64,000 nt of DNA from Piromyces finnis finn (lineage: Eukaryota; Fungi; Neocallimastigomycota): positions 124,001 to 188,000 of the forward strand of contig MCFH01000070.1 of NCBI GenBank assembly GCA_002104945.1, read 5' to 3'. Each line of letters begins with the position of its first letter. Position 1 is the stretch's first letter. Shown piece by piece: positions 55,096 through 58,000 of the stretch. The notes under the pieces are model-generated. The model saw only the letters and a program-made list of their open reading frames with translations. It was not told the origin of the DNA and ran no database searches. Made by a program: the position numbers and the translations under genes.

Positions 55096-58000
55096 ATGCC
55101 AACAATTTTTACTATAAATATACCTAATTGTTATACTGACATTCAAAGATTTGTTGAAAAAGGTATTCTTTCATTTTTGGATATTATTCCAAAAACAGAA
55201 TACATATCAATATACCAAAAACATTCATTAGAATTGTATTCTGATAATTATAAAGAGTCTTTAAAATCGGGATGGTTAACAATTGAAGATAATACAAAAA
55301 ATGTCTCTTTTACTGAAACGTTAACTAACATATACCAACAAATTTTAAATCAATGGGGAGAAGATCCAGATATACATATAATTTTAATAGCCACAATTGA
55401 TAGATTTCAAGGTTAATAATGATGTGTGATACAGATGATATTTTTATTTATTATTATGTACAAATATTTAATCGTTAATAGAATAGAATTGAAAAATTTT
55501 GCTATATAAAAACTATATATCAGATATCAATATTATAATAAATTTTCATTTATATTAATATATATTATAAAATTTTAAAATTTTAGATAAAGATGTATCA
55601 TCAATGATTTCAATGAATTTCAAATCAAAATTATCAATTATTATACTGGATACAACAAGTAGAGTAAAGTATAATAAATTCAATAATCTTCACAATTTAG
55701 TTCAGAAACATAGGGGATATTTTAAAATAATAAATCAAATTCATGATTTTAATGATGTTTTGCAACAACTCTATCGAATATATTGTAATAATACACATCT
55801 AATATTAAATATTATAGCTAATAAAGTTAATGATTATACCTTATAATAATTAAAATATCAATATATTTATTATATATTAAAAGATAAACCATATCATTGT
55901 GAATGTATTTGTGGAAATATTAATTTACCATTACAAATATATCCAACATTAAGTATGCATTTATATGTATTTATATCATTATAATGAAATATTTATTATT
56001 CTATTGTATATTCAAAAGGGTTAAAATTAATGTTAAAATATAAAATTTCATATATAAAGAGGAACCACTTTTCCCAAAAGTATTTTCAATAATTGGATTT
56101 TTAACAGAAACCGATGCCCCTTTACCAGCATATAAATCAAGATATTTATTATTACCTTATGAAAAGCAGGTATATTTTATAAAAATATTTTTATATTAAT
56201 TGTACTTATTCAATTAGTGTATATAATTATTTATTGAATTGAAAAATTTCGATACATATTTAAAAACGTTGGAAAATAGAAAAACCCATTGAATACATAT
56301 CAAGTTATTCAAAAGAGTTTAATGAATAAGCGTGTATATGCTATTGTAACATTTAATAATGGAAATTATGGATATATACATACAACCAATGATTCATCTT
56401 GTAAGACCTTTATTGTATTTTATTATAACATATACTGTATATATATATATATTAATATATGAATAAATATTATATTAAATACTATAATAGATATGTCTCT
56501 TTCACTAATACCAACTTTAGAACAGGAGGTTGAAGTAATATCAAAACATGACAAAAGTTTTAAAATACCCATACTTCAAAGTGAGACTTCTTATTTTAAA
56601 GCAGATTTGGTATGTAGTCATGTGTAAATAAATAATTCTTACTATTATAATAATGCATATTAATAATCTCAAATAATTATATTTTAAATATAAAGAACTT
56701 GATACCAAAAATTATAAGATATATTCCAGAGTTACCAAAAAATCAGGATGTTGTTTTAAATATGTAATTATTAATTTTTTTCTTTTTTTTTTTTTTTTTT
56801 TTTTTTTTTTTTTTTAAATTTATATAAATTGATGATATGATACTAAAGAACAATATTAAATTCATTATTTATTTGTATATTAATATAATAGGATACGAAA
56901 AATACATTATATGTCATTAGTTCATCAATATCCAAAAATAGTTGATTATGTGACATTGCTATTAAAAAATGAAGAAAAAAAGTAAACACATATTTACTTG
57001 TATATTTTTATTATCTAGAATATAACTAATATTTTATATATTAATAATTATGTATTTAATATTTTTAATAGATATCAAGAAAGAAATCCAAACATATGTA
57101 ATTCGTTAAACGAAATTATCTCAAGTATTGAAAATGATATATCGAATGGTAGTAGTTTTAAATCAAATTTTGCTATTTCTTCAAACTTTGAAGACAATAA
57201 AAATGATAATGATATAAATAACACATCTGATAATATGGTTTATGTAAACTATTAAGTTTTATTTATTTTTATATATAAATTAATAATTATTTGAATTATT
57301 ATAATTAATCTAACATAAATCTTTTATTTACCATATAAAGAAAAATTCAGTTAATAATAGCATTGATATGAATGTTGATATTTATAGTAACAATAACAAT
57401 AACAATAATATTGATATTGATATTAATAATAATAATAATAATAATAATAATAATAATAATAATAATAATAATAATAATAATATAATAATAATAATAATAA
57501 TAATAATAATAATAATAATAATAATAATAATAATAAATAATAATAATAATAATAATAATAATAATAATAATAATAATAATAATAATAATAATAATAATAA
57601 TAATAATAATAATAATAATAATGGTTATACTACTACTACTACTACTACTACTGTTGCTGCTAATAATAATAATAATAATAATAATAATAATAATGAAAGT
57701 AATGACAACAATAACAACAACAGTAATGATAATTTTAATAATAGTACTAATTATTATGGCAATTATAATGATAATAATAATATCATTAATATAAATGATT
57801 CAATATCAACAAATAATACTATTGGTAATACTACTACTACTACTACTACTACTACTACTAATAATAATAATAATACTAATTATAGTGTTAATTACAATAA
57901 TAATGAAAACAGTGACAATAATAACATATTCAGTAATGATGATAGTAATAATAATCATAACTATATTTATAATAAAAATAATAATACAGTTAATTATAAA

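Follow-up and report, generated by a model that had tools for sequence, protein, structure and literature searches.

Integrator has been called 'restricted to metazoans' (PMC9006982) and 'metazoan-specific' (bioRxiv 10.1101/2023.03.05.531184). Yeasts do not have it (PMC7347597; PMC12624956), and one of the species lacking it is Schizosaccharomyces pombe (PMC12624956). In human INTS14, residues D8, S10 and S12 of the MIDAS (metal-ion-dependent adhesion site) make up the INTS10-binding site, and the LG(PISD) linker motif (residues 369-374), a metazoan feature, threads through a loop of INTS13 (PMC7347597). Ku70 and Ku80 are structural relatives of INTS14 (PMC7347597). In the literature that we searched, no study dealt with a fungal Integrator. 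Here we describe a gene at positions 55096-57243 (+) of a 64,000-nucleotide stretch of the genome of the anaerobic gut fungus Piromyces finnis (Neocallimastigomycota), referred to below as the window (G000:C201:124001-188000; the assembly comprises 56.46 Mb in 232 contigs). The locus is in all likelihood the single-copy P. finnis orthologue of INTS14, much diverged from its animal counterparts. The best explanation of the data as a whole, to which we assign a probability of about 0.82, is an INTS14 orthologue encoded by a gene of probably ten exons, with a putative INTS13 partner and a putative place in an Integrator based on INTS11.

A spliced gene under purifying selection

The window is very AT-rich, with a GC content of 12-33% per 2-kb window. 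Derived from the raw sequence, the nine exons of 55096-57243 join in frame as an earlier sequence-only reading had proposed, and each is followed by a GT...AG intron of 86-175 nt. The GC content is 22-31% in the exons versus 9-15% in the introns. That reading had also noted that the list of open reading frames (ORFs) shows only two fragments of the gene, and among ORFs of at least 60 residues we likewise find only exons 1 and 2 covered (55096..55416 and 55604..55846).

A search of a library of 1.84 billion representatives with exon 1 (105 residues) recovered two orthologues, P0001 and P0002. The other matches in this library were tetratricopeptide-repeat proteins only and were taken as spurious repeat matches. 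A word search with P0001 then led to P0009, which is deposited as 'hypothetical protein BCR36DRAFT_416284, partial [Piromyces finnis]' and has 439 residues. The translation of every exon is an exact substring of P0009. The substrings follow one another directly or with a single residue between them where a codon is split, and no frame breaks occur across the exons. The nine-exon chain therefore corresponds to the public gene model. No function is named in that model, and because the gene is publicly only a 'hypothetical protein', its assignment betters the annotation. The word search also returned P0010 from Anaeromyces robustus (537 residues), P0012 from Piromyces sp. E2 (partial) and P0011 from a Joint Genome Institute (JGI) sample, and at least three other gut fungi have the protein, with identities of 66-81%. 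In the P. finnis genome P0001 matches only this locus, indicating that the INTS14-like gene is single copy.

P0001 and P0011 are encoded without interruption on the JGI contigs L013 (1578 nt) and L014 (2087 nt), respectively. When the exons of the window are placed on these contigs, their coordinates abut exactly at junctions 1 to 6 on L013 and at junctions 1 to 5, 7 and 8 on L014. At the position of intron 6, L014 precisely keeps a GT...AG intron (L014:985-1069). Retention of this intron with the other spanned junctions spliced suggests that L014 is the metatranscriptomic copy of an mRNA whose processing was incomplete. The two contigs are RNA-type evidence of splicing, and they come from close gut-fungal relatives of P. 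finnis.

Summed over the exons, the proportions of synonymous (pS) and nonsynonymous (pN) differences from L013 and L014 are 0.50-0.53 and 0.10-0.15, and the ratio of nonsynonymous to synonymous divergence (dN/dS) is 0.13 against L013 and 0.19 against L014. These ratios indicate purifying selection. The beta-barrel is the best-conserved part among the gut fungi, with long runs of invariant columns.

The 3' end requires a revision. The sequence-only reading had taken the gene to be full-length at ~420 residues, which is probably too short, since position 57243 is a splice donor and both the public model and L014 run on beyond it. The intron that follows (57244-57340) is GT-AG and leads into a probable exon 10, in frame with a 797-residue Asn-rich ORF at 57368..59761. 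P0009 takes in the first 18 residues of this exon, from the acceptor at 57340/57341. The A. robustus model P0010 aligns across the same junction and has a similar tail, and the open frame of L014 continues through an Asn/Thr-rich stretch up to the end of the contig. If 57243 is not used for splicing, the frame closes with the TAA at 57253-57255, and P0012, the model from Piromyces sp. E2, does read through to the equivalent stop. No Pfam domain was found in the 57341-59761 tail, and the tails in the window and in L014 show no significant similarity (E 19). We conclude that 57341-59761 probably belongs to the INTS14-like gene as its last exon and is not a separate gene. The ten-exon model would encode 1227 residues.

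INTS14 ranks first in sequence and fold comparisons

Whole-protein tests were run on P0009 and its orthologues, and the exons were also searched singly. The top Pfam family for P0009 is PF19435 (IntS14_b-barrel). Three orthologues pass its curated cut-off of 25 bits: P0012 (30.4 bits), P0011 (26.2 bits) and P0001 (25.9 bits). PF19435 is also the top family for exon 4 alone (36 residues, E 0.0072). The Ku barrel (PF02735, also with a cut-off of 25 bits) comes second, scoring 19.0 bits in P0011 and 20.6 bits in P0012, in both cases below the cut-off and below the IntS14 score, and P0009 has no Ku match at E <=1. Pfam searches of the exons and P0009 gave no match to Mat89Bb, the INTS13 family, at this locus. 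Eight of the nine exons had no match in single-exon Pfam searches, and phmmer searches of the PDB with exons 1 and 4 returned nothing useful; these searches were mostly blank because the exons are too short and too diverged.

Sequence comparison with proteins of known structure points the same way. In PDB sequence searches with phmmer and hmmsearch, 6sn1_B, the human INTS14 chain, comes first whether the query is P0001 (E 0.0027), the profile of alignment A1 (E 0.0086) or P0009 (E 0.11), and no Ku chain is among the matches listed. The HMMER alignment is collinear with human INTS14 residues 148-280. It reproduces three pairings of sequence blocks with 6sn1_B that the sequence-only reading had drawn, KSKLSII~PSKLYIM, YKPYHCECICGN..~YTPFHAVLKCGH.. 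and IIGFL..SRYLLLP~IVGFI..SRHLVLP.

An AlphaFold2 (AF2) model was built from a five-sequence alignment and is of mediocre quality, with a mean predicted local distance difference test score (pLDDT) of 51.7. Residues 1-172 form an alpha/beta domain with a pLDDT of about 70, and residues 313-389 form four helices with a pLDDT of 65-81. In a Foldseek search with this model, the top three matches are human INTS14 chains (E 3.4e-9, 1.1e-7 and 1.5e-7). Ku70/80 chains appear from E 2.6e-4 on, about five orders of magnitude behind. With VIA-align, residues 1-175 match the VWA fold generically, with Z scores of 14-15 to ITIH1, TFIIH p44, Ku70 and integrin I-domains and a root-mean-square deviation of 2.8-3.4 Å over about 162 residues. 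Among the alignments listed by VIA-align, those to INTS14 chains alone extend on through the C-terminal helices. They cover 255 residues and pair model residues 2-394 with chain residues 2-501 (Z 13.6-13.7). Of the ESM Atlas clusters, the nearest three are all INTS14 (0.96, 0.95 and 0.95), followed by Asunder/INTS13 (0.92) and Ku (0.90). By structure, the template modelling (TM) score is 0.66 over 302 residues to an INTS14 cluster versus 0.39 to Ku. INTS14 is thus first by profile, sequence, fold and language model, with Ku clearly second, and the identity proposed from the sequence alone holds up. We did not find what would have spoken for another identity, that is, best matches to Ku70/80 or to unrelated VWA proteins with nothing specific to INTS14.

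Other Integrator subunits and alternative explanations

The sequence-only reading had suggested that P. finnis may keep an Integrator, and this idea is backed by an INTS11 distinct from CPSF73 and CPSF100, and by INTS3 and INTS2. The Beta-Casp profile finds three loci in the genome, at C200, C153 and C169. The C200 locus, G000:C200:532226-535579 (-) (L009), is an 831-residue open frame; its score against human INTS11 is 707 bits (E 2.6e-211), versus 317 bits against CPSF73. The other two loci are CPSF73 (C153) and CPSF100 (C169), so the INTS11 gene is an additional, dedicated paralogue. The single open frame of INTS11 holds both the catalytic region and a C-terminal extension that is long, acidic and of low complexity. 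For INTS3, the Ints3_N profile picks out six collinear exons at C189:1137915-1139739, the best of them with 59 bits, and for INTS2 there are four collinear matching pieces at C182:171265-173678, with up to 55.9 bits.

For the remaining subunits, the genome search proposed by the sequence-only reading had a mixed outcome: INTS11 is clear, INTS13 is represented by a weak signal in one exon, and INTS10 and the C-terminal domain of INTS9 are unmatched in a six-frame search of low sensitivity. The INTS13 signal is an exon at C1:1305689 that matches Mat89Bb with 20.2-23.7 bits (E 2.3e-5), below the cut-off; no Mat89Bb match was found in nine other open stretches around it, eight of them at or downstream of the exon and one upstream. 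The sole six-frame match to IntS11_C (C189:790556) is spurious and falls in an Argonaute gene. This gene (L002, G000:C189:789056-792295 (-)) encodes ArgoN, L1, PAZ, L2, Mid and Piwi domains. The Ku barrel is found at two loci, C206:214345-215015 (-) and C222:743144-743870 (-), which are presumably Ku70 and Ku80. P. finnis seems to keep the end-binding pair of non-homologous end joining (NHEJ) beside an INTS13/14-type pair.

Several results weigh against the assignment to INTS14 and Integrator. The sequence similarity to animal INTS14 is weak, with PDB E-values of 0.003-0.1. P0009 itself scores 22.8 bits (E 1.1e-4) with PF19435, 2 bits below the cut-off, and P0010 (19.3 bits) is below it as well; the match spans only profile positions 1-76 of 147, and the Pfam VWA_2 and IntS14_C (PF20504) profiles have no match. 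Word searches with P0001 and the A1 profile recovered no homologue outside Neocallimastigomycota, which leaves no bridging homologues for deepening the alignment. In the AF2 model the beta-barrel (residues 174-311) has a pLDDT below 50 and no confident fold, and a second AF2 model of the barrel plus C-terminus (alignment A2, P0012 first) failed with a pLDDT of 34.7. The MIDAS, which follows strand beta-1 and is D-x-S-x-S in the human protein, reads N8-I-P10-N-C12 in P. finnis. In its relatives the position reads N-I-S-N-N, N-I-S-N-C or N-I-P-N-F, and the first residue is N in four of four. An LG dipeptide is absent from the linker and from the whole of P0009 and P0001; P0010 and P0011 each have a single LG, located at residue 45. 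A diverged equivalent of the motif may exist outside the reach of a reliable alignment. Finally, the INT10, IntS9_C and INTS1_RPB2-bd profiles had no match in the six-frame genome search, which is too insensitive to show absence. The six-frame searches with PF19435 and PF20504 missed even the INTS14-like locus, so the blanks for INT10, INTS1 and IntS9_C mean little.

These points give room for other explanations. One is that the protein descends from INTS14 and now works outside the canonical Integrator, as a stand-alone nucleic-acid-binding dimer of the INTS13/14 type or in a new role driven by its tail, with the MIDAS-dependent link to INTS10 lost. The degenerate MIDAS in all gut-fungal orthologues, the unmatched INT10 profile, the linker in which no LG motif is seen and the probable tail of about 800 residues would all agree with it. 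However, INTS11, INTS2 and INTS3 are present, and hence a core complex exists for INTS14 to join. The negative searches are also uninformative, as they missed the INTS14-like locus. Asn-rich tails are probably common in a genome as AT-rich as this. On balance, a role outside Integrator appears unlikely.

An explanation based on fold alone, in which a lineage-specific protein with a VWA domain and a Ku-like barrel (a diverged Ku or INTS13 paralogue) resembles INTS14 through the shared superfamily fold, could draw on the second rank of the Ku barrel profile in two orthologues (19-20.6 bits), on the unspecific VWA matches at Z 14-15 and on the modest E-values to INTS14. We regard it as very improbable, because INTS14 stands above Ku and INTS13 in every test, those of Foldseek and the Atlas included, the blocks that align run in the same order as in human INTS14, and elsewhere the genome has two true Ku loci as well as a distinct candidate for INTS13. 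A chance chain of open frames or a decaying pseudogene would be conceivable in a very AT-rich genome with many short open frames. This reading is in effect refuted by the conserved orthologues, the low dN/dS and the unbroken frame, and spliced contigs of relatives also exist; it is hardly credible. An INTS14 orthologue acting with Integrator remains the preferred reading.

The exons of the INTS14-like gene and the neighbouring genes are listed in Table 1.

Table 1. Exons of the INTS14-like gene and neighbouring genes, in window coordinates
Feature	Position	Strand	Content	P0009 residues	Further observations
Exon 1	55096..55411	+	Start codon, 105 codons + 1 nt; VWA-like N-terminal half, with degenerate MIDAS position N8-I-P-N-C12	1-105 (exact match)	75% identity to L013, 69% to L014; beta-alpha-beta in AF2 model, pLDDT about 70-77
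Exon 2	55587..55784	+	Second half of VWA-like domain	107-171	HMMER alignment with human INTS14 from residue 148 on; junctions abut exactly in L013 and L014
Exon 3	55884..55952	+	Start of beta-barrel, invariant KPYxCExICGNI block	173-194	Inside Pfam IntS14_b-barrel match (residues 172-236); invariant columns in alignment A1
Exon 4	56060..56169	+	Beta-barrel, IIGFL...SRYLLLP block		Aligned to human INTS14 about 240-280
Exon 5	56280..56400	+	Beta-barrel	232-271	72-80% identity to relatives; pN 0.14-0.16, pS 0.44-0.60
Exon 6	56491..56609	+	End of beta-barrel and linker	273-311	
Exon 7	56696..56763	+	Start of C-terminal helical domain	312-333	Helices 313-323 and 328-345 in AF2 model, pLDDT 65-80
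Exon 8	56892..56981	+	C-terminal helical domain	335-363	Junctions 7/8 and 8/9 contiguous in L014
Exon 9	57072..57243	+	Last helix, then low-complexity stretch; ends at GTAAAC donor	365-421	
Probable exon 10	57341..59761	+	806-codon Asn/Gln/Thr-rich low-complexity frame, long (AAT)n runs, ends TAA		
Putative retrotransposon ORF	3724-7383	+	1219-residue ORF with reverse-transcriptase domain RVT_1 (E 9e-36); probably of the non-LTR (long terminal repeat) kind		
KA1-domain ORF and adjoining ORF	16255-19971	-	Weak, sub-threshold protein-kinase match in adjoining ORF; possibly a MARK/Kin1-type kinase		
Myb-domain protein gene	22246-25143	-			
Choline-transporter-like protein gene	37099-40275	-			
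Triosephosphate isomerase exon	52500-53198	-	TIM, E 3e-88		Some 2 kb upstream of the INTS14-like gene, opposite strand

Comparison with Ku, INTS13 and animal INTS14

Combining the gene model and the similarities described above, a mechanism can be proposed. The nine small exons are predicted to encode a VWA fold at the N-terminus, then a beta-barrel like that of Ku and a short helical domain at the C-terminus, to which the tenth exon would add a long, probably disordered Asn-rich tail. The protein may pair with the INTS13 relative encoded in the same genome, forming a Ku-like heterodimer as in animals. This heterodimer would be seated on an Integrator that has the INTS11 endonuclease at its centre, and it could help to deliver the nascent transcripts of RNA polymerase II to the cleavage module. 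Our confidence in the pairing with INTS13, in membership of the complex and in a role in RNA 3'-end cleavage is lower than that in the orthology. Because the MIDAS that holds INTS10 in humans is degenerate in P. finnis, the contact with INTS10 has probably been lost or is made differently. A more far-reaching proposal, which we consider doubtful, is that the Integrator of Neocallimastigomycota works with a rewired arm that has no MIDAS metal site, LG interlock or INTS10 and carries the disordered, Asn-rich INTS14 tail of ~800 residues. If this were true, gut fungi would offer a natural minimal or variant Integrator, and the complex would predate the animal-fungal split and have been lost later within fungi.

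The case for Integrator in gut fungi is one of comparative genomics. Judged from the gene content, the complex probably survives in P. finnis, an early-branching fungus. The occurrence of an INTS14 orthologue beside INTS11, INTS2 and INTS3 in such a fungus supports an older origin of Integrator and its later loss in yeast lineages. Plants and amoebozoans have annotated Integrator-like subunits, and a pre-animal origin is therefore not a new idea.

Compared with the known systems, the gut-fungal protein shares with Ku70/Ku80, the NHEJ heterodimer, the superfold of a VWA domain, a beta-barrel and a helical arm, and two orthologues show weak matches to the Ku barrel. It differs in that Ku ranks below INTS14 in every test and has two loci of its own elsewhere in the genome. 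INTS13/Asunder, of the Mat89Bb family, has a paralogous architecture and is the expected heterodimer partner; the Mat89Bb signal, in contrast, sits at the separate candidate locus on C1. The closest likeness is to human and other metazoan INTS14 (6SN1, 9EOC). The order of VWA fold, beta-barrel and C-terminal helices is the same, collinear blocks are found at the boundary of the VWA domain and the barrel, and the human and P. finnis proteins both start with MPT. On the other hand, the identity to human INTS14 is only about 15%, the P. finnis core is shorter (about 390 versus 518 residues), and the protein probably has a low-complexity C-terminal extension of about 800 residues. Set beside animal INTS14, this diverged orthologue would show which features are dispensable, the MIDAS and the LG motif, and which are fixed, the blocks of the barrel.

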